Origin: Mobula birostris
Lineage: Eukaryota
Assembly: GCF_030028105.1 (NCBI RefSeq)
Contig: NC_092376.1
Location: forward strand, 116,558,230 to 116,622,229
Reading direction: 5' to 3'
Length of the DNA: 64,000 nt
Shown here piece after piece: positions 17,895-58,740 of this stretch. A program made the position numbers and the translations under genes. The notes beneath the pieces were generated by a model, which made no database searches, was not told the DNA's origin, and saw only the letters and a program-made list of their open reading frames with translations. Positions within the stretch are counted from its first letter, which is position 1, and each line of letters starts with the position of its first letter.

Positions 17895-18031
17895 NNNNNN
17901 NNNNNNNNNNNNNNNNNNNNNNNNNNNNNNNNNNNNNNNNNNNNNNNNNNNNNNNNNNNNNNNNNNNNNNNNNNNNNNNNNNNNNNNNNNNNNNNNNNNN
18001 NNNNNNNNNNNNNNNNNNNNNNNNNNNNNNN
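17895..18031. other. Assembly gap (137 N)
   Basis: Run of N. Confidence 1.
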
Positions 18032-24946: not shown

Positions 24947-27900
24947 CAGTGGCAATCCGGGGATGGTTAATATATTCACATCCCATTGTTGTAGGGAGGG
25001 GGTGGTTGGGAAGCACTGAAATTGCGCCCCTATCCAAACATCTGACACCCATCTTTTAGATAACTTTACCATAATATCAGCTCAAAAATACAAATCAAGC
25101 TCGTTAATCTTTTAATTAACAAATTATGGCACTACATGAAAATTACAACACACTTTCCTTGCTTTCACTGATGCAAATTGGTCTATGATGTGATCAAAGT
25201 CAGTTTTTTCAGTTTCTTCTCTCTCTACACTCAGCAGAGCAAGATCACAGAGTCTGCCTTGACCCATGGAGGCTCTCAAATATGAAAGTATTGGTTTTAA
25301 CTTGCTGAATGATCTCTCACAGCTGGCAATGGAAACTGCGATGGTTAGCATTATCTGAACAGCAAAGTAAAGATTGGGGAAGACGCTCTCATCTCCATAC
25401 TGAACAATAAATTCAAGAAGCCCTTCAGGTCTTGATATTTTCATGTTGACCCGCCTTGATAGCTACATTTTGAATCCAAAATTTCTTCATATACCTGCTG
25501 TCCATCAACATCAGAGCTGTACAATTTGCCCAAATTTTCGCACTTCTTCTTTGAGTCATTGCTGTCGGTGTCGTAACACAGTCCCTCGACATTGAGAAGG
25601 AACCCAAACTTGTCATGCAAATGAGCGAAACTTTCATCCATCTGTCTGTGAAGACGGTCGAGTGTTCCCTTCATGACTCTTTCCATTTCCCCCTTAGCTG
25701 TTAACCCAGCGTCTCTCGAGTTCTCATCAGCCACTCGTTTCTTTTGTCTCTGACGTCTTTCAACTTCAATATTCCATTCTTGACTGAGACCGACTCCTTC
25801 TTTGAGTGATTCACTGACCAACACTTCTCTTTCATCATAAAAATGATCTCGGAGGGCTTTCAAATCCAGGGCAGCATCGTGCAAGTTCATGCTAGGATCC
25901 TGCAGCCTCTTTTGAATACGGTCAATGCGAATGAGTACTTTGTTCCAAAATCCTAGCAAAATCAGAAAATTGTAACTCAACATGTGGTTGTACAGCTGCC
26001 TTGCATCACTTCTTGTTTCATTGGTCTCGTTTTCATTGTCTATTATGTCCTGGAGAACTTGAAGTATCTCCTCAAGGTACTTGTTGACGGGCTTCACTGC
26101 TTCTGTCCTTGCACTCCACCTGGTTTCAGACTCCGACTTAAAAACCACAGGCACGGCGTTTTTGAATTTTTCCCAGCGCTGTGTTGAACGAGATGAAAAC
26201 ACGTAGAGAGCTTCGATGGTTCCAAAAGACGTGACCATCATTGTATCCTGCTTGGCTGCATGTACACCCACCAATTTGAGTGAGTGATTGTCGCAATTCA
26301 CAAACACCGCCAGGTTGTTTTTCTCACTTATTCTTTGATGAACACCACTTCTGTGTCCAGCCATCACAGCAGCATTGTCATAGCACTGTGACTGACAATC
26401 TTACAGCTCCATTTCATCCTTCTCTCGTTGTTTCAAGATGTCTTCAACCAAGCTCTCAGGGCTCTTCTGCTTATCTGGATAAAACCAAGGAAGGACTCTC
26501 TGACACGGACTGTTTTCCTCTCAGAATCAACTTCCACATACCTCACTACTTCTGACATCTGCTCACGGTGTGCTTGATCAGGAGTTGAGTCGAACATGAG
26601 ACCATAGTACTTGGCTTTACGAATGCTTCTCAGTAAACTCTCGTGAACAGTGGATGCCATCATGTGGATGAATTCGTTCTGGACACCCGATGAAAGATAG
26701 GATGTGGATCCAGGATGACTTTCCAAATGAGTTAGGTGTTGTTTTATGACAGGGTCAAAGATGGCCCATAGTTTCAGTAAGCCAAGGAAACTTCCCACAT
26801 TGGAGTCATCGTATAGCTGAAGTGACTCCCTGTGTCCTCGCAAAGCCAGGTTCTGAGTCGCAAGGAATTCTTGTCAAGATATCACACCACTTCTGCTTTT
26901 CCTTCTCAATCTGTGACTGAAATACCGCATCAATAACTCCTCTGTTTCCAGCTATATTGCTTTCCATTTCTTTCCACTGTGTGAAGCATTCCCGATGATT
27001 CTTGGCATTTTCATCAACACTAATCCTTTCAGGTGCTTTCCACTGGTTGAATCCACTTTCCTGCTCCAATGAGGATTGATGGTCTGACCGGGAATAGAGA
27101 AGACAACAGATACAAAATGAAGACTTTTTAGAAGGGGAATAGACCAGCTATGAGCGAGACACTTCCTCACCATGACCATTTCGCAATTTCCTCTTGAACC
27201 AAGTTTTGTTCATTGAGCAGTTATTTGTTGGTTGGAAAGGCCCCTCACCGTTCTGGAAATACTTCGAACCCAGCTTTATTATTTCTGTTCTCAACGCATC
27301 AGGCAGAATTGCTTTTCCAGTATCCTTGTCGAACTTCAGAAGTCCAATGTCATGCTGTTCAATCACTTCTGGTATGACAGCTTGAGGCTCTTTGACACCG
27401 TCCTGTTCACTAGGTTCAGTGTTGTCAGGTTTAATCTTGTCAGGTAAAATCTCGTCAATAAACTCAACATCACCACCACCACCATCGTCTTCCCTTCCTG
27501 TCATGTCCACGTTCTCTGTGGCAGCCTCACTCTTAATCTCATTATACTCGGATTTATCTGACTTGACTTCCTCCTCGGCTTATGACGCATTTGTACTTGA
27601 TCCACCTTCGGATTCTAACAAACGTAGCAGGTGCAGGTGACTCCATGGAACGTGTCAAACTACTTGTTCCAAGCTTTTCAAAGGAGGGCATGAAGAACTT
27701 GCTCAACTTCTTGGCTTCCTCCTCTTCCAACTTTCATCTCTTCCGTCCTTCAGCTCCACTTTTGTTCTACTTCGTGAAGAAATGTTTCATGCTCTTCTTA
27801 CACAATGCTCTGATATAAGGCCATCCTAGTGCTTCTCACCCATGATAATCAAAGACAGATCATACATCTGAAGAAAATTCTTTTTTCACTATTGGAAGAT

Positions 27901-30385: not shown

Positions 30386-31856
30386 TTTGGTTTCCATTTG
30401 ATATCTGAGAGTTGGAACCTAAAACACAATGTTGAAATTTTGAATTGTTCTTTCTCATGTAAATATTTTATATACATTGCTATTTTCTATAAATAAAATT
30501 TACCCCTAGAAGCGTGTGTTTTCTATTCATTGCCTCCTTTCGATACCTAGAGCTTCTGATGGCCCACTAGCACCTGGTGTAGTACGAAGCAATTTGATTT
30601 TTCTCAGTCACATGAGATAAGACAAGTGCTACACAGGTGTTACATTACTGTCAGTGTCCTATTGTACAACAGCTCTATCATAACCATTTACATCTGTCCA
30701 ATGCAATTCTCCCCGGTTCCTCAGGATCACAGTCATGCCTCGGATTTCTCCCTGCAAAGAGTCAAAAGTCTTATTTTTCTGTTGTCTCATCCCTTCTGAT
30801 AAGGCACATCAAATTCAACAAGTCAGGTATGATTACTCAAATAGAAGACAAAAATAAAACACAGAATAAGGGATGCATCTCAAGATCCACTCCAGAATCT
30901 AACCAGGATGAATTATCTCAGTACTCCCAACATCATCACATCTTTTTGTGGTTTATTAACCCAAATTACGCCAATGATTCTCAAATCATTCAGTTCCTTC
31001 ATTAACGCCATTAAGTCTTTTAAGACATACTGTATATCGTTCATTGATAAGTAAGTACACCAAAAATAATACATGCACATGATCCAAAAACTCTATCGAA
31101 AACACTAAAATAGAAAATACCATTTTCAAAAAGGCAATCCAGGCTGAAGCATTGTGAATTTCAATAAACAGTTCTGATATGACATTCTGCTATTTTTCCA
31201 TCACAGTTCATATTGGTGAGGGGCAATTTTCAGTTACTCTCCTGGCTTTATCAATTCACCTTCAACGCAAATTTATAGATGGAGCAATATGCTCAGACAT
31301 TGTAATCTGTAGTGTTGCCACCTCTCCAGAGAAGGTCAGTTTTATTTGTAGTTCCAAAAAATGCTTTCATGCCGTGAAGTTGGAGCGCATCAGCCATGTA
31401 CAAGTAGTTTAATGGTGTTTGTACATTTCCGCCGTTTACATTTGTGAATGCCTGTTGAAGTCAGTATTGATCAGATGATGGCCATCATAACTTTTCAGTT
31501 ATGTAATGATTTGTTACTTTGATGACATTGTCACATAGCTGGAGTCCAGAAAAAAGGATATTGTTTCCATACACAAAAATTTCAGGCTTTCTTTCCAGTT
31601 CATAACTTTTCTGTAAAGTTTGGTACTAACTCTGGATTCTGCACCCTCACTTGGGATGGGTATTTCAGTCAACATATGTGGTCAATCTTTGGTTCACTAT
31701 GGGAAGGCCTTCCCATGGACATCAAAGTGATTGCTGCAAGGGTATGGAGTCTCTCACGGGCTTGGTACTGCTCCTGTTCTGACAGATGGAGGATGTGCCT
31801 GAGTGACACAAAAATGCAGAACACCGATGAGTGAACCATAGATGCTGTACTTGAAC

Positions 31857-34957: not shown

Positions 34958-37900
34958 AAACATAGAAACATAGAAAATAGGTGCAGGAGTAGGCCATTCG
35001 GCCCTTCGAGCCTGCACCGCCATTTATTATGATCATGGCTGATCATCCAACTCAGAACCCTGCACCAGCCTTCCCTCCATACCCCCTGACCCCCGTACCC
35101 ACAAGGGCCATATCTAACTCCCTCTTAAATATAGCCAATGAACTGGCCTCAACTGTTTCCTGTGGCAGAGAATTCCACAGATTCACCACTCTCTGTGTGA
35201 AGAAGTTTTTCCTAATCTCGGTCCTAAAAGGCTTCCCCTCTATCCTCAAACTGTGGCCCCTCGTTCTGGACTTCCCCAACATCGGGAACAATCTTCCTGC
35301 ATCTAGCCTGTCCAATCCCTTTAGGATCTTATACGTTTCAATCAGATCCCCCCTCAATCTTCTAAATTCCAACGAGTACAAGCCCAGTTCATCCAGTCTT
35401 TCTTCATATGAAAGTCCTGCCATCCCAGGAATCAATCTGGTGAACCTTCTTTGTACTCCCTCTGTGGCAAGGATGTCTTTCCTCAGATTAGGGGACCAAA
35501 ACTGCACACAATACTCCAGGTGTGGTCTCACCAAGGCCTTGTACAACTGCAGTAGTACCTCCCTGCTCCTGTACTCGAATCCTCTCGCTATAAATGCCAG
35601 CATACCATTCGCCTTTTTCACTGCCTGCTGTACCTGCATGCCCACTTTCAATGACTGGTGTATAATGACACCCAGGTCTCGTTGCACCTCCCCTTTTCCT
35701 AATCGGCCACCATTCAGATAATAATCTGTTTTCCTATTTTTGCCACCAAAGTGGATAACTTCACATTTATCCACATTAAATTGCATCTGCCATGAATTTG
35801 CCCACTCACCCAACCTATCCAAGTCACCCTGCATCCTCTTAGCATCCTCCTCACAGCTAACACTGCCACCCAGCTTCGTGTCATCCGCAAACTTGGAGAT
35901 GCTGCATTTAATTCCCTCATCCAAGTCATTAATATATATTGTAAACAACTGGGGTCCCAGCACTGAGCCTTGCGGTACCCCACTAGTCACCGCCTGCCAT
36001 TCTGAAAAGGTCCCGTTTATTCCCACTCTTTGCTTCCTGTCTGCTAACCAATTCTCCACCCACACCAATACCTTACCCCCAATACTGTGTGCTTTAAGTT
36101 TGCACACTAATCTCCCGTGTGGGACCTTGTCAAAAGCCTTTTGAAAATCCAAATATACCACATCCACTGGTTCTCCCCTATCCACTCTACTAGTTACATC
36201 CTCAAAAAATTCTATGAGATTCGTCAGACATGATTTTCCTTTCACAAATCCATGCTGACTTTGTCCGATCATTTCACCGCTTTCCAAATGTGCTGTTATC
36301 ACATCTTTGATAACTGACTTCAGCAGTTTCCCGACCACCGACGCTAGGCTAACCGGTCTATAATTCCCCGGTTTCTCTCTCCCTCCTTTTTTAAAAAGTG
36401 GAGTTACATTAGCCACTCTCCAATCCTCAGGAACTAGTCCAGAATCTAACGAGTTCTGAAAAATTATCATTAATGCATCCACTACTTCTTGGGCTACTTC
36501 CTTAAGCACTCTAGGATGCAGACCATCTGGCCCTGGGGATTTATCTGCCTTCAATCCCTTCAATTTACCTAACACCACTTCCCTACTAACATGTATTTCG
36601 CTCAGTTCCTCCATCTCACTGGACCCTCTGTCCCCTACTATTTCTGGAAGATTATTTATGTCCTCCTTAGTGGAGACAGAACCAAAATAATTATTCAATT
36701 GGTCTGCCATGTCCTTGCTCCCCATAATCAATTCACCTGTTTCTGTCTGCAGGGGACCTACATTTGTCTTTACCAGTCTTTTCCTTTTTACATATCTATA
36801 AAAGCCTTTACAGTCCGTTTTTATGTTCCCTGCCAGTTTTCTCTCATAATCTTTTTTCCCCTTCCTAATTAAGCCCTTTGTCCTCCTCTGCTGAACTCTG
36901 AATTTCTCCCAGTCCTCAGGTGAGCCACTTTCTCTGGCTAATTTGTATGCTTCTTCCTTGGAATTGATACTATCCCTAATTTCTCTTGTCAGCCACGGGT
37001 GCACTACCTTCCTTGATTTATTCTTTTGCCAAACTGGGATGAACAATTGTTGTAGTTCATCCATGCAACCTTTAAATGCTTGTCATTGCATATCCACCGT
37101 CAATCCTTTAAGTGTCATTTGCCAGTCTATCTTAGCTAATTCACGTCTCATACCTTCAAAGTTACCCCTCTTTAAGCTCAGAACCTTTGTTTCTGAATTA
37201 ACTATGTCACTCTCCATCTTAATGAAGAATTCCACCATATTATGGTCACTCTTACCCAAGGGGCCTCTCACGACGAGATTGCTAATTAACCCTTCCTCAT
37301 TGCTCAAAACCCAGTCCAGAATAGCCTGCTCTCTAGTTGGTTCCTCGACATGTTGGTTCAAAAAACCATCCCGCATACATTCCAAGAAGTCCTCTTCCTC
37401 AGCACCTTTACCAATTTGGTTCACCCAATCTACATGTAGATTGAAGTCACCCATTATAACTGCTGTTCCTTTATTGCACACATTTCTAATTTCCTGTTTA
37501 ATACCATCTCCGACCTCACTACTACTGTTAGGTGGCCTGTACACAACTCCCACCAGCGTCTTCTGCCCCTTAGTGTTACGCAGCTCTACCCATATCGATT
37601 CCACATCTTCCCGGCTTATGTCCTTCCTTTCTATTGCGTTAATCACTTCTTTAACCAGCAACGCCACCCCACCTCCCCTTCCCTCATGTCTATCCCTCCT
37701 GAATATTGAATATCCCTGAACGTTGAGCTCCCATGCCTGGTCACCCTGGAGCCATGTCTCTGTGATCCCAACTATATCATAATCATTAATAACAATCTGC
37801 ACTTTCAATTCATCCACCTTATTACGAATGCTCCTTGCATTGACACACAAAGCCTTCAGGCACTCTTTTACAACTCTCTTAGCCCTTATATAATTATGCT

Positions 37901-38050
37901 GAAAAGTGGCCCTCTTTAATGCTTGCCTTGGATTTGTCGGCCTGCCACTTTTACTTTTCTCCTTAGTACTTTTTGCTTCTACCCTCACTTTACACCCCTC
38001 TGTCTCTCTGCACTGGTTCCCATCCCCCTGCTGTGAACTAACCTCCTCAC
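34958..38050 (-). mobile_element. Young CR1 LINE; ORF2 (35052-38090) intact except one in-frame TGA at 37080-37082
   Basis: APE (CVNARSIRNK, VGITETW, MGDFN) in frame with RT ([25 protein letters not shown]); (TTTCTATG)n tail. Confidence 0.95.
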
Positions 38051-38187
38051 GCCTAGCCTCTTTAATTTGATTAATTTGAACAGTTGTCAATAGAATGTCA
38101 ATCTTTCATTTTTCAGATCTCTTTTGCCTGCAATGATTGATCAATGCTTCTACTTTCTTGTCTGTTCTGTCGTGTTTGCCATGCATA

Positions 38188-38292: not shown

Positions 38293-41200
38293 CTAGAAGT
38301 GTGAACACAGGTGGACAGGGAGGAGACAAATGTGTGTAGCAGGACAACTATACATTATGACCAGAGAATAAAGGAAATGGGAATAAGCTGTTTACAAGTT
38401 TCACACAGATACCGGGAGTACCTCATTGAGTAGAGACATGGTCTTATCTACACTGGAGGAAACAGGAGAGTCACATATCTAACCTTTGTCATTACTTTGC
38501 TCAAATAAAGCATTTTACTTTAAATAAATATCATCATCACATGTGAAGAGCAACTTTACATAAATATCTTAACAAAATGTTTTGAATATTAAATATTAAT
38601 TTGTCACTTACGTTTCCACTTGCAAAGCAGCACGGTGATGGAAAGAAAAGAAACAAAAACTGAGACACGAGCGGTCCAGCAAAGCAGAAAAATCAGGTTG
38701 TTTACACGCTCACCAGGAACCTGAAACAGAGAACAAGACCTATTTTCTCAGCTTTAAATTTAAAATGAGCGAACTGCAAGCTCTGTATAATGCCGACATG
38801 GCTTCCTTAAAGTCTGCATGCACAGTGTGGACTGTTGTCTTTACAGATATTAAAGATATCCATTAAGATGTACGTTTAGCTGAATCCCTCAGCACCCGGC
38901 AGCTTTGTATGGATTTATCCTGGCTAGGATCCTCCTCAGCTTGGCTGTGGTCACACAGGGTTGCAAAATGAGATGGAAATGAGCCATTAGGAGAAAGCAA
39001 TAGTGAATTGTTCAATATGGTAGGGCTGGAAGAACTGATCTTCATTTTCTATTTCTGCTGTGAAATTTTGACAAATAAGAGAATGTGAGACAGCTGGAGC
39101 TGTAATATGTTCTGGAATGTAATGGAACCCATCAGAAGCCTTTTAGAGATGATCAACATAAATTATCTGCAGAAGAGCAGATCTGCTGGACGAATGCTCA
39201 GGAATTAGTGGGAAGTGCCAGTTGTGCAGGTCAATATCATGGAGAATGTTCCAAGGATGTAAGAGCTGTGAGAAAGCTGAAGTATTTCCCAAGTTAAATC
39301 TTATACTGGTATATCCATCCATGTGGCTACCAGCATCATTGATTGTACAATAAACCCTGACACACAAATTGGTCACCTCCATTGCTCAGTCCTCAATACT
39401 TCAATTCAAAAGATTCACCTCACCTTCATTCACTGAGCCCGCGTGCAAACTCACTGATTACGCATACAAATGCATAGGCGTAAAGGGCTCTTTTCTAGTT
39501 GGCTGCCAGTTACTACTGGCATTCTAAAGGTTCATTTTATAGTCAGAGTATTCATGTACAACTCTGACATTAGTCTTTTCCAGATAGCCATGCAATGTAG
39601 AAACCAGTAACAACAACATCACACCACCAAACCCCTCCCCCGCAAAAACAAACAGCAACAACAGCACCAAACCCCTAATCACCTCAAACACACAAAAAAG
39701 GAGATTGCCCACACAGAAAAAACAACAAGGACATCAGATCCCAAGTCCCCAACCCCTCCCACATACAAAAACCAACACATTGTCCACCCAGAACCCTAAC
39801 CAGCCAAACAGCAAGAAGCAAGAAAACATAAAAACCTGAAGGAGTGCAAAATAAATTACTGACTAATAATCCCATACATCTCAGAATTTCAAGCATATCC
39901 TCCCACCAGAACCGTGAGAGCGACTGCTTGAACTCAGTCCCTCCATGTAGGGTGACCATCATGCCACTGACCTGTGGCCTTCTGACCACTGCCCTGCTGA
40001 TCTGAGGCCTTCAGAACGCTGCTGAGCTGGCTACCAACCACCCTCAATCCATGGCCTCCATGGACAGCAACCACTGACCTCCTCCACATTCACCATGATA
40101 CTTCAATCTTCCGCAATGCTTCAAAACGGAGTTGATTATGGCAGTGGTCCCCAACCACCGGGCCGCGGACCGGTACCGGGCTGCAGAGCATGCGCCACCG
40201 GGCCGCAAGGAAACGATATGATTTGGCGATAGGAGTCAGATGCACCTTTCCTCATTCCCTGTCACGCCCACTGTTGAGCCATTACACATGCGAGGTCATT
40301 ACCCGCGCATCATCCATGTCAGCGCGGGAAGGAGATCAACTCCTCGAGCTTGCAAATGACGGTGGGTTGAAATGTATGTTTGACATAACATCTCTGCCAG
40401 CATTCTGGATCAAAGTCAAGGCTAAAAATCCTGAGATAGCCACGAAAGCACTGAAAACGTTGCTTCCATTTCCAACATATCTCTGCAATGAATGCAACGA
40501 AAACTAATTTGCGGAATAGACTGGACATAAGGAACGCCGTTCGAGTATCGCTGTCCCTCGTCACCCTTCGATAGGACCGTCTTGTTGCAGGAAAACAAGC
40601 CCAGGGCTCCCACTGATTCAGCGATATTGGTGTGTTGCAATGACTTTATATGTTCATACCGGGAAAATATATGCTGTATGTTTAATATCCAAACGTTACT
40701 TAAAATGTTATGATGCTATTGACTTGTATAACAATTACAGCACGGAAACAGGCCATCTCTGCCCTTCTAGTCCGTGCTGAACGCTACTCTCACCTAGTCC
40801 CACCGACCTGCACTCAGCCCATAACCCTCCATTTCTTTCCTGTCCATATACCTATCCAATTTTTCTTTAAATGATAATATCGAAGCTGCCTCTACCACTT
40901 CTACTGGAAGTTCGTTCAACATTTACTTCAAGCTCCCCTGGCCTCCCCGATAATTGACTTATCACTATATTCATGCGAGGAAAATATGTGTTTAATATTA
41001 AATTTGTTAGATAAACCCTTTTAGAAACGAAATTGAGTGTATTAGCTAATTATCATCTATATTCCGGTCGTGATTAACACCGCCCTCCCCTCCCCTGGAA
41101 CAGAATCGCCAAAAACGATCTGCAGAAAAAAATCATATACGCATGCGCAGTGGTGCCCGCGCAAGGCTTCATGGTCATTGTAGTCTTTCTCGGGGTAAAC

Positions 41201-42665: not shown

Positions 42666-45600
42666 CATTTAAAGTGGAGGTTGAGATATTCTTGATTAGT
42701 AAGGGTGCAAGAGGCTGCAGACTTGAGGGGCCAAAGTTTGATTCTGCTCCTGTCCTCCTCCTCTTGTTATGGTTTTATGGTCTCCCCTCCCTTCACCATG
42801 ACCCAAACAGAGTTCTGCTTTCACTTCAGAACAATCTCTTCAATTACTTAACTTTTTCTATGAAAAGTGTTGGCGCGTGGCCAAGTGGTTAAGGTGTGGG
42901 TCTAGTGATCTGAAGGTCGCTAGTTTGAGCCTCAGCTGAGGCAGCGTGTTGTGTCCTTGAGCAAGGCACTTAACCACACATTGCTCTGCGATGGCACCGG
43001 TGCCAAGCTGTATCGGCCCTAGTGCCCTTCCCTTGGACAACATCGGTGGCGTGGGGAGGGGAGACTTGCAGCATGGGCAACTGCCGGTTTTCCATATTAC
43101 CTTACCCAGGCCTGTACCCTGAAAACCTTCCAAGGTGCAAATCCATGATCTCACGAGACTAACGGATACCTATGTGTATGTTAAAGTTCTGGCATTCCAA
43201 AGGTTATTTTATTGTCAAAGTATGCATGTACAATACAACTCTGGAACAAGCTGAGCAGAAGGAGATAACTTTGTCATCTCAGTGAAATTTTATGATTAAA
43301 TTACACTTATCTTCTGGATAAAAAGGTATTTACTCACAGCTAAATGTGGAGTTGAACTGGAATCTCTGGGAGATGTAAACGGAGAGGTTGTAAGACCTGT
43401 AATGACAGTTGTAAGAATGAAATGTGCAGAAAACAGAACAAGATGGTATTGAGTATAAAAACAGTCTTACCCAGATACTGAGATAATTTGCCAAAACTTC
43501 CAGACCCATGTTTCAGAACATAGAAAAGTACAGCACATAAACAGGCTCTTCAACGGGCTCTTCAACAGGCTGTAATTAAATGGCCAAATAAACTAAACCC
43601 TCATGTCTTCTACTGGTAGATGAAACTACAGTCTACAAATTAGTGGATTTGGATGAATCAAGGACAGGGGAAGTAGACAAACCAATTGGTATTGTTTCCC
43701 CCCCACCCAATTTGTGAACTCTGAACTGAGTCTTGCTCTGTGGTAATTTAATCAGATCGATTGAATGTGAACACAAGGAGCTTCAGCTAATGACCTGCTA
43801 AACTTGAGACAATTCTCAGATGAGTAGGTATTTATTATGTAAACTGGTAGATTTACCAGAGAAGTGATTTGTAATCTCATTAGTTTTAGTGTTTGGGTTA
43901 CCTAGTTTAACTGGTTTGGACCAGTCAGAGTTGAAAGACACAAATACATAAGGCTGGGGTGGATAGAAACATGAAGCAATGTTGGTTATAACCCTGGACT
44001 AGAACCAGTAAGAAGGTGACCCAGGTGGGCCAGGTGACCTTGAGCCAATGGATGGAGATCCACCAGTTCAACTGATGAGGTACACTATAAAAGTCAGGAG
44101 TTCCAGATACGTTACAGCGATAACTCTCCAGCAACCAGAGATCAACCATCGCGGATGAGGCGGATCCCACGGACATGTGGAGACCAGGGCCATGAGGAAT
44201 GCCTGGCCAGCATAGACTCTTTTCGCTGGTAGTACCTTTTCCCTTCACTGACTGTTCATGGAGGCTCTGGGAATTCTGGTGGGTGTGCAGACAAGTAGTT
44301 AGTTCATGAACCCACATGCTTTTTAGTTTAGACAATAAAGGTTACTTGTAGGTAAATAGAGATTCTTTCTGATCATTGTTGCAACGGGTGATTCTTATAA
44401 CAAGGTCCCTCAACCTACAATGTAGTGGCAAAACAAAATAAATTAAGCACATATTCCTATCCTTCCCTCAACAAAGTCTCTGCAATGGCCAGAACATCAT
44501 AATTCCATGTACTGATCCATGCTCCAGTTCATCATCTTTATCCATAATACTCCTAGCATTGAATTACACACACTTCAAACTATCTGTTGCATCTGCCTAT
44601 TACTTTTCTCCTGCCTGTTTTTACTGGCCCTGGCATCTACCTTCCTCTGCATCCCTCCACTTTCTGACCTGGTGTTCTGGTTCCAATCCCCGGCCAAACT
44701 AATTTAAGCCATCCTGAGTAGCACTGGCAAACCTCCTGGCCAAGAAATTGGTTCTCCTCCACTTTAGGTGCCTCATGTCCTTTATGTTCAGGTCACCCCT
44801 GGTCCAGAAGAGGTTCCAATGATCCAAGAACCTGAAACCCTGCCCCTGCACTAGTTCCATAGCCATTCATTCATCTGTACTATCATCCTATTCTTGCTCT
44901 AACTAACAGGTGAAACAGGGATTAATCCAGAAATTATTGCCTTGGAGGTCCTGCTCTTCAGCCTTTTTCCTATCTCCCTATACATAATTCCTGGGGAATC
45001 AATTTTCCTTCGGCTTTTGCATTCCACTAATTTGGTCAGATATTACCAGTAAGTCAAGGAGTCTGTTACATCCTCTACCTCTGAGTTCAGTGCTTTTCCC
45101 CAAGAAGAGATTGAAATAAGTAATGAGAAAGTTCCAAGGTGAGGATTAGACTCAAGTCCTTGTGAAAAGGCATTCTGTCCTTAATGAGCCATTGACATTA
45201 TCATGGTAACTCATGGGTACTACAGGGATCACTATTACATTGTACATTTTATATTGTAGCATCCTGCCACTTTCACCCAGCGCATTATCCATACTACATG
45301 TACAACAATTAACAACAAAGACAGAATCAATATTCCTTATGTTACTTCATATGTTTTCAGTGGGCAGAAGAGCACTATTCATTCAATCAAAGCAATATAA
45401 TCTCTCCAAACAAATGTGCCCCATGTATATGGAGGAAACTCGAGCACCTGGGGAACCGAGGTGACCTTCTCATATGGAGTATCGAAACTCAAGGTTGAAC
45501 CTGGGTCACAGGATCTGTGGGACAGTTACAGAAACTGCTACACTGCTGCACCACCATTGATGAGACAGAAACATGGAATATTGAACTGCTTGCTGTCCAA

Positions 45601-48600
45601 AACCAGAAGATTCAAGTACATTTTCCGATCATTAAACATTCCAAGAATCTCCACACGGCAGCAATACCAGCCACTAACTCCTCTCTGTAGATCACTTGTA
45701 GTGTGTGATACATCTCCATCCCCAATTCTACCACCAAGATGATAGCCTTGGGATGTCACAGAAGTTACCCTGTCTCCATTCGTTCTAACCAGTAACAAGC
45801 CAGTGTTACAGATAGCACTGTCTGGCACGAGAAGAGGGAGCGCAACCACAGTCTGAAATCTTGTCCCTACACTGAGAAACAGATCAAATTACCAGCAGGG
45901 CAGGATCTGAGGAATGCTATAGAAAATTTCTACCTATTCACTGGGATGTTAACTGCTTACACCTCCCTCACTTCTCAAATTTATCCTCAGACAGGTGGTG
46001 ACAATCAGCTTTCTTCAGTCCTGGCCTTTCCATAGTAGACTTGATACAGTTGACTCCTTGTGGTGCCATTTCAGTGCTAATCTGTCACCAAAAGCAGACA
46101 TTCACCAGGCATTTGAGATATTAACTGCTGCCATCAACAAGCAAGAAATTGTCCACCTCAATCGTCGTCCCAAATTTCAATCAGGTTTATTTGAAGAAAT
46201 CTCCACCCAGTTATCATCAGCATTTAACCTGCAGCACCAGGGGTCCCAACCACTGCTACACCTCGATTAGGAAAGCCTGCTGTTCCATGCCAAGACTACA
46301 TTTTGAGAAATCTGATCACTTGGTTGTCCTTCTCCTACCTGCATACAGGCAGATTCTAAAGATCAAAGCTCCAGTGATGAGCACAACAAAGAGGTGGTTG
46401 CAGGAGGCAAAGTTGTGGCTATGGGATTGCTTCAAGTCAGTGGATGGGCCATGTTCAAGGACTCATCAAAAGATCTGAATGAATACACCACTGTGGTGAC
46501 GGAGTTTATTAAAACAATTGTAGATGGACATGTCCCCAAAAAATCATTTAGAGTTTTCCCCAACCAGAAGTGCTGGATGAACTTTGAGATCCACAATCTG
46601 CTGAGGGCTACTGTAGATCAGTGTCACTCAGGCCTGGTAGTCTAACAAGATACAAGGTGTACAGTTACAATCTCTGGAAAGCCATCTCACATGTGAAGTG
46701 GCAATCTGGAACAAGCATGAGTCACTGGGGATGCTCGACAGCTACAGCAGAGCTTGAATGCTATTATATCTTACAAACTGAAACCAAGCGACATAGGTGA
46801 CAAAGCAACGCACACAAAATGCTGGAGGAATGCAGCAGGTCAGGCAGCATCAATGGAAATGCACGAACAGTTGACATTTCGGCCCAGGCCCTTCTTCAGG
46901 GCTCAGAGATGACAACACGGTTTCATTCCCAGATGAGCTCAATGCCTTCTGTACTTGCTTTGGCTCTCAAAGCATTGAGGAAACTTCACAAACTCCCACA
47001 GCCCCCGATGACCCTGTGATTTCAGTTTCTGAAGCAGACATTAGAGTGTCCTGAAGGAGAGTGAACCCACAAAAAGCATCTGACCCAGAGGGGGTACCTG
47101 GCCAAGTATTAATTGCCTGTGCTAATCAACGGACTGGATATCTCTAATTATATGATCTGTATGACCGGTATGTAAAATAAGCATTTCACTGTAAAAACAC
47201 ATGTGACAACTAATAAACCGATATCAATTCTAATGAAGACCTCATCCATTTCCCATGACTCAGAATTTAGATTACCACAGTGATGATTCTTCCTCCAATT
47301 GCTTTTTCATTCTTAGTATACTTGTGGAATCTTTGATAATCTCCTCTATTTTATCAGCCAGAGATATCTTGTAGCCCCCTTCTAATTTCATTCCCAAGTG
47401 TTCTCCTACATCCAATATTATAATTGCTTGAAGCAAGCTGCCTATACCTATCACTTGCCTCCTTCTTTTTCTGGACCAGATCCTCCATATCCTTTATCAC
47501 TGGGTTCTCTAATTTCACCAGCCTTGCACATCACCGTAACAGGAACATGCTGGTGCTGAAGTCTTCCTGTCGCACAGTTAAGTGCCTCCCACTTGCCACA
47601 TGCCCCCTTACCTGCAAGTAGCCTCTACCAGTCAACTTTTATGAATTCCTGTCTGACGACATCAGAATAAGCCTGACCCCAGTTTACGACATTATATTGA
47701 ATCATATCAAAAGCTAATATAATTATGGTCACTGATCACTAAGTGCTCCCCCACCACTGAACAAATCAACCACTTGCCCACCTCATTTCCTAGGGAGAGG
47801 TCAAGTCTAGCCCCTTCTCTAGACAGGGAAGGAAATGTTTTACCTATATGTGGTTTTTGAGGAGATGTTAGGTTAATTAATGAGAGTGGATGCTGTTGAC
47901 TTCAAAAAGCGAATGACAAGGTGCTTCAGAGTAGGCTGATCTAGAAGATTAAGGACCATGGGATCGACAGAGACCCGGCCAGAGAATACTTTATCTAAGT
48001 TAAAGCCATCATAATTGTTAATGTTCTACACCTGAACATTTAAGTTGAAAGCAATTTCAAGGCTTTCTTGTCCACTTTGAAGATTGATAGTTAAATTGTG
48101 CAGTTTACACAAATAAAAAAATATTAATGTCATTGTTTAGAAGATAAATTGTACCACCTGGAAGATGCAGACTGACCCTGGTAAGCAGATGGAGCAATGT
48201 CATTTCCATGGTCTGCAGACAAGGACTCAATTGTAGTTGAAGGAGATGTTGTGCTGGTTTCTGCAACAGAAGAAGAGTTAATTTACTTTCATGTCAGTGA
48301 ACTCATTCATTTTTCTCAATCAATAACTCACATAGAATTAAATGAGGGCTGGGTTAGATCTGGAGAACCAGTAAGTGTGATGGATATTCAGGTTCAAAGT
48401 GCCTCTCACAATTAAACAAAAAAATACATTGAATTTATGGTGATACACAGGAATGTTTTTGTTACAGAAATAAAACAGTGAAGTTAAAAGATAGCCTTTG
48501 GATTGGTAGTCAGTAAGTGCTGGGTCAAATGTAATTCTACGGAGGACCCAGTTATCTACACTCTATTGGCGAGGATGAGTGAAAAATGGCAACGTGCTAC

Positions 48601-55100: not shown

Positions 55101-58100
55101 TGTGCTGTATGTTTTCTATGTTTCTCTGTTTCTAAACCGGGGTTTGGGTGGGTGAAACATCCCAACCTCAGGGATTTGGTGGGACCAAAGTCATATACAC
55201 CCTAGATATACAAAGCCCGATAAAGGTGGGTTTCTTGCTGTGGGATCCGGTGGCTCATTAGCGAGGGGCTGATGAGCTGCATTTCCATAGACACCCAGGA
55301 AAAAGGTTTCACTGGCAAATAGATATTATTCTTTACCCAGATGTTGAGGAGAAGGCAGAGCTTAGAAGATTGAGAGATGAGCTTGTTGAAATGCATACAA
55401 TTCTGAGAGGGTTTGAAAGGGTAGGTGTCTGAGAAGCTTTGCCTGTCAAGAATAGGGATAATCTGAAAATAAGGGGTCATTATTCAGGACTGGGATGGAA
55501 TGAAATTGATGAGGAAACAAAGGGTATATTTGGAGATTTACCAACGGTGTAAAACCAAGTGGGACTGGGAGCACAGAAGAGGATATGAAGAGGCAGCAAG
55601 GTTATATAGACAAGCTCAGCAATGTGGACAGCTTTGACCTCTCTCTGTCATGGTCTGGTCCATAAAGCCCGCATTCTGGTTCACGGCCCGGTCCATCGAT
55701 CCGTATTCCAGGTTTTCCGGTTTTCCATTGTTCTGTAGGGTGCTCTAATTAAAGCACATGATTCTCGTTTGGGCAGACACATAAATACCGCTGGAGACCA
55801 GGGCTTGGCTGCTGGATTGTTCCTGTCCAAGCCCCCTGTCTGAATCCCTTCTTTGCTCCTTCCTCCTGAAGCCTTGCCTTGCAACCAGTATCTGAAGCCT
55901 TGCCTCACCTGTAACCCTTGTCTGCAACCTTTGACTGCACCACTGTCAAGTCAACTGCCGGAGCAAGATAAGGAACTGTCTATTGTTGTTTTGAACTGTC
56001 TCTGTGTCCATGCCTTCATTAGGTAGGTCCGGCCATTTGCTGCTACCTGGTGTTGGGAACCGTCTTGTCGTGTTCAGCATTCTGTGTTGAGCCCTGGCCC
56101 CTAGTCCTGTTCCCAAGGATGGTTCCTGGCTCTATGTTCTGTGTATGAGTCCCAGCCCTAAGTCCTGTTCCCAAGGAGGGGTCCTGGCTCTGAGTTCCAT
56201 GTCCCTGTGTCCTATCTCTCAAGTCCAAGGCTCCATGATCCTGTGCTCTAGACCAGGGTTCTGTGTTCCTGTCCTCCCCAAGACCAAGGCTCTGTGTTCT
56301 GTGTTCATCAGGACTGAAGAGGGAAGGGGCAGAGGCCCTATAAAGGAGGTGGGGGGAGGGTGGGAAGGAAAAGGCTGGGAGGTTCCACGTGAAAAACCAG
56401 TAAGGGGAAAGATAAAGGGGTGGGGGAGGGGAAGCAGGGAGGTGATAGGCAGGAAAGGTGAAGAAAGAATAGGGAAAAACACAATGGGTAGCAGAAGGAG
56501 GCAAAACCAAGAGGGAGGTGATAGGCAGCTGGGGGAGGGGGCAGAGTGACATAGGGATAGGGGAAATGGAGGGGGAGGGAATTACTGGAAGATGGAGAAT
56601 TCTATGTTCATACCAAGGGGCTGGAGACTACCTAGATGGTATATGAGGTGTTGCTCCTCCAACCTGAGATAAGCGTCATCATGGCAGTACAGGAGGCCAT
56701 GTATGGACATATCTGAATGGGAGTGGGAAGCAGAGTTGAAGTGGGTGGCTACTGGGAGATCCTGTCAGTTGTGGCGGACGGAGCGGAGGTGCTCGACGAA
56801 GTGGTCCCCCAATCTGCGTCGGGTTTCACCGATGTAGAGGAGGCTGCACTGGGAGCACTGGATGCAATAGTTGACCCCAACAGATTCACAAGTGAAGTGT
56901 TGCCTCACTTGGAAGTACTGTTTGGGCCCCTGAATGGTGGCAAGAGAGGAGGTGTAGGGACAGGTGTAGCACTTACGCTTACAGGGATAAGTGCCAGGTG
57001 GGAGATCTGTGGGGAGGGACGTGTGGACCAGGGAGTCGCGGAGGGACTGATCCCTGCGGAAGGCGAAGAGGGGTGGAGAGGGAAAGATCTGCTTAGTGAT
57101 GGGGTCCTGTTGAAGATGGCGGAAGTTGCGGAGGACAATGTGTTGGATCCGGAGGCTAGTGGGGTGGTAGGTAAGGACAAGGGGAACTCTGTCCCTGTTG
57201 TGGTGGCGGGAGGATGGGGTGAGAGCCGAAGTGCAGGAAATGGAGGAGATGCGGGTGAGGGCATCATTGATGACAGCAGAAGGGAAACCATGATCCTTAA
57301 AGAAAGAGGACATTTGAGATGTCCTGAAACAGAAAACCTCATCCTCGGAGCAGATGCGGCGGAGACTGAGGAACTGATAATTGATAATGAATGTTGGAAC
57401 AGCCAGAAATGCCCAATGGACAACTCCTGCTTCTATTTGTTATGCTCCTCTGACAGCAGCATTAACACTGTTATTAACACCCGAAGCCCATTGTTTTGTG
57501 TTGTATATTTGATGCAACACACAAAACATTCCTCTCCACAGAATCTCAGACAATGCACTCTTTGTCCGTTATCACACTGTAATGTCCAGCCGTTTTCATC
57601 CTGCACATTATCCATTCTACTGGATATACAACAGAATAAACAATAAATCAGTATTGATTATGTTATTTCTTACGCTTTCAGCGGCAGAAGAGGGCTGTTC
57701 AACCCATCGAGAACATATCATCTGCCCAGGAATTCCTTCAGATACATCCCCCATATCTCCCTGGAAACAGCTCCCCGCCATTGTCCTGCTGTTTATCTAC
57801 ACTAGAGGCAGATTACACTGACCGATTAACCTACCACAGAATCATGTAATATCGAACTCCTTACCGTCCAAAGCCCGGAGATTCAAATTCGTTTTCAGAT
57901 CATTAAACGGTCCTGGAATCTCCACACGGCAGCAATACCAGCCGCTATCTTCTCTCTGTAGATCATTTATAGTGAGCGACACATCTCCTGCCGCAATTCT
58001 ACCACCAAGACTATATCTCTGGGATGTTACAGAAGTTACTCTGTCTCCATTTGTTCCGATCAACACGTGTCCGCAGCCGCTTAAAGAGCACTGTCCCCGA

Positions 58101-58740
58101 CCCCAGCACATCGCACTTTTGACATATTTTCGGACAGAATAGCGGCACGGCAGTGTGATCGACTCTCCCGTGACTCCTCGCACGTTTGTCCCAGAGACGA
58201 AGGCGACTCGACCTGAAACAATCCAGGAAAGAAAGTTACAGATGGCGCTGACTGAGATGATGAGAGGGGTTGTGACCACAGTTTGAAAACCCGTCCCAGC
58301 ATTGGGAAACTGATCCATTTTTCCTGCTGCGAGGCATCGGGGGAATATGACGGAACATCCCCAAACTGCCCAGTGGGAATCGAACGGACACCTCTGATCA
58401 CAGATCCAGCCTCTCGTTCATTTTCCCACTCACATACCCACTGTGCTCCCAAACCTTCACCGCAATGATTGTGCAATACACAGTGATCAGGTGTTCCACA
58501 GTCCATTCTGATCAGCACTAGTCAGTCCTCCAAGTTCACCCCTCAATCTTCAAACCCGGCAGACCCGGCACCACTCAGGGTCTAGGCTCCCTGACTCACA
58601 CACCGGCTCCACCTCAATTACTGTATTCCAAGAAATTGTAACAACAAGATTAAACAAGTGAATTCGATTCCTGCCTTCAGAAACGTACCTATCAGAAGAA
58701 ACATTATTGTTAAATGAGCCACAACACTAGTAACAGCCAT
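38188..58740 (-). CDS. TIM/HAVCR-family (T-cell Ig and mucin domain) receptor, hand-built 7-exon model, about 256 aa; orthology (HAVCR1/HAVCR2/TIMD4) not resolvable
   Basis: Exons 58740-58689, 58212-57865, 48260-48177, 41723-41677, 38720-38612, 38447-38422 and 38292-38188 sum to 771 nt. All have AG/GT boundaries and compatible phases (1,1,1,0,1,0). They join into one ORF: signal, IgV, S/T stalk, TM, tail. Exons 1-5 are well supported; exons 6-7 less so. Confidence 0.8.
38422..38447 (-). CDS. TIM exon 6 candidate (H)KTMSLLNE
   Basis: Open only from the second of two AGs (ctccagtgtag|); donor GAG|gtactc; phase 1-0. A paralogous micro-exon ending AATGAG|gt occurs at 1562-1581. Confidence 0.55.
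38612..38720 (-). CDS. TIM exon 5, transmembrane exon [36 protein letters not shown]
   Basis: Acceptor ttgttctctgtttcag|, consensus donor C|gtaagt, 25-residue hydrophobic span followed by basic KWK. Confidence 0.85.
40142..41332 (+). mobile_element. hAT-Charlie/Buster-type non-autonomous element (CR1 tail inside at about 40727-40930)
   Basis: TIRs CAGTGGTCCCCAACC/GGTTGGGGACCCCTG; perfect 8-bp TSD GATTATGG; [22 protein letters not shown] transposase remnant. Confidence 0.9.
41677..41723 (-). CDS. TIM exon 4, short stalk exon (V)[15 protein letters not shown]
   Basis: Pyrimidine-rich acceptor ending acttccag|, donor CAG|gtagct, 47 nt, phase 1-0, bridging exon 3 to the phase-0 TM exon. Confidence 0.72.
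42060..42408. mobile_element. Solo LTR inserted in a CR1 fragment
   Basis: TGTCATGG...TTGCGACA, TSD TAAGT/TAAAT; CR1 sequence continues on both sides. Confidence 0.7.
42612..42666. repeat. (TG)n(TA)n microsatellite
   Basis: Direct inspection. Confidence 0.95.
42872..43173 (+). mobile_element. tRNA-derived SINE
   Basis: A box TGGCCAAGTGG, B box-like GTTTGAGCC, body gtgtccttgagcaaggcacttaacc, LINE-like tail. Confidence 0.8.
43389..44402 (+). mobile_element. Solo LTR, 1014 bp, antisense within TIM intron 3
   Basis: TGTAAGA...TCTTATAACA, perfect 4-bp TSD AGGT, internal GCCAAT, TATAAAAG, AATAAA in order. Confidence 0.82.
45235..45960 (-). pseudogene. Truncated TIM IgV relic nested in intron 3 of the intact gene
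   Basis: Encodes [26 protein letters not shown]...[14 protein letters not shown]. Flanks match intron 1 and intron 2 of the intact gene. The acceptor and N-terminal half of the IgV are deleted; the donor is mutated (A|gcaagc). Confidence 0.9.
46190..49170 (+). mobile_element. Rex1/Babar fragments (about 46190-47215 and about 48570-49170) with a minus-strand CR1 APE fragment (about 47280-47830); TIM exon 3 lies between them
   Basis: [27 protein letters not shown] (Rex1 APE start); FPNQKCWM; decayed CR1 endonuclease. Confidence 0.7.
48177..48260 (-). CDS. TIM exon 3, mucin-like stalk (E)[27 protein letters not shown]
   Basis: Acceptor tcttcttctgttgcag|, donor G|gtcagt, 84 nt, phase 1-1, S/T/P-rich. 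Confidence 0.78.
49215..49830 (-). mobile_element. CR1 3' ORF2 fragment
   Basis: [32 protein letters not shown]. Confidence 0.85.
50384..51172 (+). mobile_element. PIF/Harbinger non-autonomous element
   Basis: 17-bp TIR G(A/G)CTACGTCCACACTAG, TAA TSD on both sides; internal coiled-coil ORF remnant (50575-51027). Confidence 0.88.
52063..52201. repeat. (AG)/(AT)-rich microsatellite within a CR1 fragment (about 51940-52610, minus)
   Basis: Direct inspection; CR1 RT-like sequence on both sides. Confidence 0.85.
53420..55123 (+). mobile_element. Rex1 fragment (about 53420-53770) fused to a CR1 3' half (about 53770-55123)
   Basis: The ORF switches from Rex1-like [16 protein letters not shown] to CR1 [27 protein letters not shown]; TTTCTATG tail. 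Confidence 0.85.
55646..56303 (+). mobile_element. Partial Gypsy-like LTR truncated by a Penelope element
   Basis: Starts TGTCATGGTC; CATAAATA box; internal repeats (ctgaagccttgcct; agtcctgttcccaagga). Confidence 0.55.
56304..57378 (-). mobile_element. Penelope-like element, 3' part with GIY-YIG endonuclease
   Basis: [34 protein letters not shown]. Confidence 0.9.
57865..58212 (-). CDS. TIM exon 2, IgV domain (348 nt)
   Basis: Acceptor ttgtttcag|, donor G|gtaagg. Translation has all six TIM cysteines: [28 protein letters not shown]. Confidence 0.96.
58689..58740 (-). CDS. TIM exon 1, signal peptide [17 protein letters not shown](G)
   Basis: Strong Kozak context gcgccATGG, hydrophobic 17 codons, phase-1 donor G|gtacgt matching the phase-1 IgV exon. 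Confidence 0.88.

Follow-up and report, generated by a model that had tools for sequence, protein, structure and literature searches.

TIM-1, TIM-3 and TIM-4 have been studied as phosphatidylserine sensors, as virus entry factors and as a cancer checkpoint, and to our knowledge all three are thought to signal, or not to signal, through their own cytoplasmic tails. Here we describe a TIM gene of the manta ray Mobula birostris whose product carries an arginine inside its membrane anchor, and we consider whether this receptor might instead work through an adaptor protein. The gene lies on the minus strand of a 64,000-nucleotide stretch of contig NC_092376.1 (called C8 below), positions 116558230-116622229. 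We refer to this whole stretch as the window and number positions from its first nucleotide, except where C8 or another contig is given. The gene has been annotated automatically but is otherwise undescribed, and its conserved charged anchor is a real feature.

Mammalian TIM-1 and TIM-4 (HAVCR1 and TIMD4) share with the manta protein a six-cysteine immunoglobulin V-set (IgV) domain, an FND sequence in the FG loop of that domain, a stalk rich in serine, threonine and proline, and a single-pass type I topology. They differ from it in that the anchors of the mammalian homologues in the match list are uncharged, the manta stalk is very short (48 residues), and the FG-loop tip is PF in the manta protein rather than WF. 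The tail of TIM-4, like that of the manta protein, is without a signalling motif. TIM-3 (HAVCR2) resembles a second manta gene, referred to below as the twin, whose tail ends in EENIY, a sequence that we take to be akin to the conserved tyrosine motif of TIM-3. The window gene has instead a tyrosine-free tail and a charged anchor.

Several receptors outside the TIM family, including FcalphaRI, GPVI, NKp46, OSCAR, LILRA2 and XFL, are like the manta TIM in combining a short tail with an arginine in the outer part of their anchors; these receptors need an adaptor that bears an aspartate. In the mammalian receptors coupled to FcR-gamma, about 15-16 residues separate the arginine from the cytoplasmic boundary. 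Such receptors have their NxxR motif right where the span begins, whereas the manta arginine comes after nine hydrophobic residues, and for this reason we do not file the manta anchor in the NxxR sub-family of the leukocyte receptor complex and FCRL receptors. Binding of FcR-gamma by NxxR-type anchors has been demonstrated experimentally as far back as Xenopus XFL (PMC2413239; PMC4536121). The nearest functional analogue of the manta TIM is CD300b/LMIR5, an activating receptor in a lipid-sensor family that has inhibitory members too. It uses a membrane lysine with DAP12. It differs from the manta protein in belonging to the CD300 immunoglobulin family rather than to the TIMs, and in having TIM-1 and TIM-4 as its ligands. 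It is described as a single-IgV myeloid receptor that is coupled to DAP12 and binds both TIM-1 and TIM-4 (PMC2901072).

The manta anchor is encoded by the fifth exon of a six-exon gene that runs from 58740 to 31722 on the minus strand. An exhaustive search of exon boundaries near the tblastn matches left a single six-exon solution, with canonical GT-AG sites at all five introns. Exon 1 (58689-58740; 52 nt, ending in phase 1), placed by this unique chain together with tblastn, provides the start codon and leader peptide. Exon 2 (57865-58212; 348 nt, phase 1-1), identified by Pfam and by solved relatives, encodes a TIM-type IgV domain that has six cysteines and carries PFND in its FG loop. The chain and tblastn matches also define exons 3 (48177-48260; 84 nt) and 4 (43338-43396; 59 nt, phase 1 to 0), which encode the first and second Ser/Thr/Pro-rich parts of the stalk, as well as exon 6 (31722-31798), which supplies the rest of the tyrosine-free tail and the stop codon. 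Exon 5 (38720-38612; 109 nt, phase 0 to 1), supported by the chain and by conservation, lies between an AG acceptor (38722-38721) and a GT donor (38611-38610), and encodes the single anchor arginine, the 15 hydrophobic residues that follow it, and KWK.

The spliced translation is identical to P0003, an automatic NCBI model of 242 amino acids named 'hepatitis A virus cellular receptor 1-like' from Mobula birostris, which was retrieved by a database search with the IgV exon and maps onto the window at 100% identity by tblastn. The IgV exon sits 19 kb upstream of the anchor exon on the same strand, and the two are joined in the unique canonical exon model, as a first-pass annotation of this DNA had required of its proposal that the locus encodes an adaptor-coupled TIM. 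The predicted product consists of a leader, the TIM-type IgV domain, the short Ser/Thr/Pro mucin stalk, the arginine anchor and a 28-residue tail, the last being assembled from the KWK of exon 5, an arginine codon split across the junction, and the remainder of exon 6. This short tail has no tyrosine at all, which agrees with the earlier prediction that it would hold neither an immunoreceptor tyrosine-based inhibitory motif (ITIM) nor the corresponding activation motif (ITAM). A pseudo-exon or chance open reading frame is ruled out by the exact six-exon model and by cross-species conservation.

Assignment of the ectodomain follows from several comparisons. The IgV exon matches the Pfam V-set family (E = 2.7e-17), and its closest solved relatives are mouse TIM-1 (2or8, E = 8.9e-33) and human TIM-4 (5dzn, E = 7.1e-31), together with human TIM-1, TIM-2 and TIM-3. 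All six cysteines align without gaps in the columns of their counterparts in 2or8 and 5dzn. In the FG loop, PFND aligns with the WFND of TIM-1 and TIM-4, such that the Asn and Asp are kept and the tip Trp is replaced by Pro. As is typical of the family, the domain is joined to a Ser/Thr/Pro stalk (exons 3 and 4), after which come a single membrane span and the tail (exons 5 and 6). Judged from its sequence, the domain belongs unambiguously to the TIM family, and by homology, given the six cysteines and the retained Asn-Asp pair, it probably binds phosphatidylserine.

The sole open frame of exon 5 reads VPGERVNN, then a 25-residue hydrophobic span, then KWK. Within this span the only arginine (R199; CGT codon at 38669-38667) is residue 10, with nine residues before it and 15 after, exactly as the first-pass annotation had read it. 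The residues between R199 and the cytoplasmic KWKR are exactly 15 in number and all uncharged. These 15 residues are too few to cross the bilayer alone, and the arginine lies within the only possible membrane span, where it has the character of the basic residue found in adaptor-coupled immunoreceptors. A hydrophobicity scan likewise placed R199 inside each best-scoring window at widths of 17-23 residues. On an approximate biological hydrophobicity scale, windows that contain R199 have an insertion cost of about +0.3 to +1.2 kcal/mol, compared with -3.6 for the uncharged anchor of the twin. Marginal stability of this kind is usual for segments that depend on a partner and fits coupling to an adaptor. 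An AlphaFold2 model built from the single sequence contains one continuous helix at residues 185-224, with a predicted local distance difference test (pLDDT) score of about 70-77 there; the whole-protein model, made without an alignment, is poor (mean pLDDT 42.5), and the anchor helix is its sole usable part. Within the anchor, the arginine lies buried at about a third of the depth, counted from the outer membrane face.

The arginine is maintained among elasmobranchs, as the first-pass annotation had asked of an alignment of chondrichthyan anchors. We aligned 13 homologous segments from nine species (Mobula birostris, M. hypostoma, Hypanus sabinus, Hemitrygon akajei, Leucoraja, Heptranchias perlo, Scyliorhinus canicula, S. 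torazame and Mustelus asterias). The arginine is present in all of these segments except one, and always precedes (K/Q/R)WK by 15 residues, while the positions that neighbor it vary. Retention in 12 of the 13 segments indicates that the feature is more than chance, and across this alignment it spans the shark-ray split, some 300 million years. The tails are free of tyrosine in all rays and in four of the five sharks, and one Hemitrygon isoform has a tyrosine within a C-terminal extension. The reach of the comparison depended on the query: when the Mobula anchor and tail were used in a word-based search, only stingray relatives were found, and a shark query with a profile recovered the sharks and the skate. 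The profile search gave no chimaera or bony-fish anchor matches at E = 0.001, and exon 5 had no match in a phage collection, as expected. Within the manta genome itself, exon 5 has two intact paralogues that are 97-98% identical to it and three decayed ones, two of which (the decayed exons showing 73-77% identity) still keep the ARVSVF codons.

The charged anchor has an uncharged counterpart on a nearly identical ectodomain. In four species of the set (Mobula, Hypanus, Hemitrygon and Heptranchias), a twin TIM combines an uncharged anchor with a tail that ends in (E/D)ENIY; the tyrosine-type counterparts are P0005, P0009, P0011, P0020 and P0025. An uncharged anchor is also found in a Heterodontus TIM. 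The M. birostris twin has intact exons at C8:116.88-116.91 Mb, about 250 kb from the window gene and on the opposite strand. Within a species, the IgV domains of the arginine type and the tyrosine type are 87-91% identical; when sharks are compared with rays, the figure is 50-63%. Clusters of IgV domains in a maximum-likelihood tree follow species and not the type of anchor. The approximately unbiased test rejects a clade that unites the tyrosine-type IgV domains (p-AU = 2e-84), and the groups for it had been named before the tree was built. The grouping by species and the high within-species identity indicate that two old signalling modules share an ectodomain that evolves in concert. An IgV domain shared in this way over two types of anchor is the hallmark of paired activating and inhibitory immune receptors.

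Candidate adaptor chains are encoded in the same genome. The Pfam TCR_zetazeta profile matches two membrane exons of M. birostris, at 59.5 and 56.6 bits (cut-off 25), and both carry a Cys and an Asp. By comparison with the human sequences, we take the exon at C18:98440460 to be FcR-gamma-like and the exon at C7:39292028 to be zeta-like. In both, the first basic residue on the cytoplasmic side follows the Asp after 15 intervening residues, which equals the spacing of R199 and K215 in the TIM. The equal depth of the TIM arginine and the adaptor aspartate is a geometric argument, not proof. A complex prediction with two copies of the FcR-gamma-like membrane exon and TIM residues 180-228 returned a score of 0.03, which counts neither for nor against binding.

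We reasoned from these sequence features that the arginine-anchored TIM may be the activating half of a paired system that is coupled to an ITAM adaptor, a proposal to which we give slightly better than even chances. Under this proposal, the TIM IgV domain would sense its ligand, probably phosphatidylserine, and the anchor arginine would pair with the membrane aspartate of a disulfide-linked ITAM adaptor dimer, most likely FcR-gamma or CD3-zeta, with DAP12 also possible. The adaptor would be needed for stable expression of the TIM at the cell surface, and would relay the ligand signal to kinases of the Syk/ZAP-70 type. The twin in the same cluster would offer a nearly identical IgV domain on an uncharged anchor with the EENIY tyrosine tail. 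The first-pass annotation had supposed that such a mode was not known for the TIM family, and our literature searches likewise returned no account of it; nor did we find a paper on a TIM with a charged anchor or on the TIM genes of sharks or rays. Its central idea, that this TIM signals through an ITAM adaptor, is partly supported: the conserved charged anchor, the tyrosine-free tail, the tyrosine-tailed twin and the Asp-bearing adaptor exons agree with it, physical pairing with an adaptor is putative, and the manta segment is not of the classical NxxR type known to bind FcR-gamma.

Several observations weigh against adaptor coupling. The anchor lacks NxxR, its Asn residues being located 10 and 11 positions before the arginine, and the nine hydrophobic residues that precede the arginine make it possible for the side chain to snorkel to the outer interface. 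The one exception in the anchor alignment, a 75-residue S. torazame fragment (P0124), has His in place of Arg. The model of the skate Leucoraja (P0123) has an ITIM-like SIYWLL in its tail where ray tails read SIPLQQ. On the adaptor side, a regular-expression search for ITAM exons within 10 kb of both adaptor exons gave nothing convincing, although ITAMs are usually split between exons, and the two loci are candidate adaptor genes. Evidence for transcription is likewise weak: words of the IgV and anchor exons are found in several small contig sets that come from at least three studies and are guessed to be RNA, and these matches cannot separate paralogues that are 97-98% identical.

Some of these same observations would be explained if the protein were an adaptor-free tethering or decoy TIM, which holds phosphatidylserine targets or competes with its twin while its arginine snorkels to the outer head-groups. 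Mammalian TIM-4 provides a parallel, as its tail is dispensable, and the manta tail is short and free of motifs. The nine hydrophobic residues before the arginine, and the 15 that follow it, which together with KW might come close to crossing the bilayer by themselves, are also compatible with an anchor that stands alone, as are the lack of NxxR and the tolerance of His at the arginine position in one shark fragment. What speaks against a tether or decoy is that the arginine and its exact depth are fixed in about nine species while the neighboring residues vary, that the arginine-containing span is only marginally stable by itself, and that the paired layout with its homogenized IgV domains is the signature of activating and inhibitory pairs. 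On balance we regard this explanation as unlikely, though it deserves serious consideration. The arginine could, alternatively, have another role in the membrane, either by engaging a different acidic partner (a DAP10-like chain with YxxM, or some other protein) or by governing retention in the endoplasmic reticulum, turnover or shedding of the ectodomain. Conservation marks a constraint and does not name the partner, and the segment differs from the NxxR type that experiments have defined (PMC2413239). A Pfam search of the genome, however, gave no match to DAP10, a negative result made weak by the shortness of the exons, and the depth match between Arg and Asp, together with the pairing of arginine-type and tyrosine-type genes, fits an ITAM adaptor more simply. 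We therefore consider a role of this kind improbable.

A further explanation concerns only the copy in the window, which might be a silent recent duplicate in a family where the charged anchor is nonetheless real. The cluster is built of segmental duplicates in which many IgV and anchor exons have decayed, and the introns are full of LINE (long interspersed nuclear element) and other transposon sequence, both of which are compatible with a silent copy. The six open exons with canonical splice sites, which yield a complete protein equal to the NCBI model, argue otherwise, and so do the exon words in the several small, probably RNA, contig sets, within the limit on near-identical paralogues given above. 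Silence of this copy is thus very improbable in our estimate. Adaptor coupling remains the best-supported mechanism that the data suggest, resting as it does on inference.

To place the manta anchor in a wider context, we compared anchors among 120 retrieved TIM homologues. The mammal, bird and most reptile homologues in the match list have uncharged anchors, in line with the earlier statement that the membrane segments of human TIM-1, TIM-3 and TIM-4 carry no charge. Outside elasmobranchs, an arginine anchor together with a short tyrosine-free tail is found in Lithobates (P0028), Xenopus (P0100), Dendropsophus (P0015), Albula (P0035) and Conger (P0120). The Lithobates protein stands beside a near-identical twin, P0026, that has an uncharged anchor and a DNIYT tail, and true NxxR sequences are present in Dendropsophus P0015 and in the two elopomorph TIMs (P0035 and P0120). 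The EENIY-type motif likewise occurs in TIM homologues of sturgeon, paddlefish, caecilian and frog. This distribution raises the tentative and rather doubtful scenario in which an arginine-anchored, adaptor-coupled TIM and a tyrosine-tailed, TIM-3-like twin, with a lipid-sensing IgV domain in common, date to early jawed vertebrates and were kept in sharks, rays, frogs and some basal teleosts, with the activating half lost in amniotes.

The window gene is part of a TIM cluster of about 0.5 Mb at C8:116.42-116.91 Mb. Its full-length IgV exons number at least nine, of which several contain stop codons and some form tandem arrays at 116635790-116646661. The cluster also includes three intact and three decayed arginine-type anchor exons and, on the opposite strand, one gene with a tyrosine tail. 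Intron 3 of the window gene holds a decayed half-copy of an IgV exon (45595-45816, minus strand), outside the mRNA model, that keeps the C-terminal half and upstream intron-like sequence and has lost the N-terminal half. The same relic is present at the matching place in the paralogous units at C8:116670605 and C8:116480140, and the relic thus predates the segmental duplications.

Transposon-derived sequence is found on both sides of the anchor exon. Just upstream, a retroelement-derived open frame (38892-39011, minus strand) resembles the C terminus of P0007 (isoform X2), another M. birostris TIM model; this likeness indicates that, in the paralogue, the predictor splices the stalk to a transposon fragment and not to the anchor exon. 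Directly downstream, intron 5 contains a LINE-type element (35055-38105, minus strand) in the same orientation as the gene, with an endonuclease-like open reading frame of 340 amino acids (37086-38105) followed by a reverse-transcriptase frame of 676 amino acids (35055-37082). Further reverse-transcriptase fragments are located at 33.2-34.7 kb and 53.4-54.3 kb. Long open frames at 25127-27579 (minus strand), which lie downstream of the TIM gene, have the look of a hAT-type transposase with a C-terminal dimerization-like motif, and a run of 137 N at 17895-18031 represents an assembly gap or a masked stretch.

In the manta and elasmobranch TIMs, one ectodomain evolves in concert above two ancient signalling modules, and they are a clean example of this process. 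If the proposed coupling is correct, ITAM-adaptor signalling would be added to the repertoire of the TIM family, and early vertebrate immunity would have linked the sensing of dying cells to activating as well as modulating outputs.
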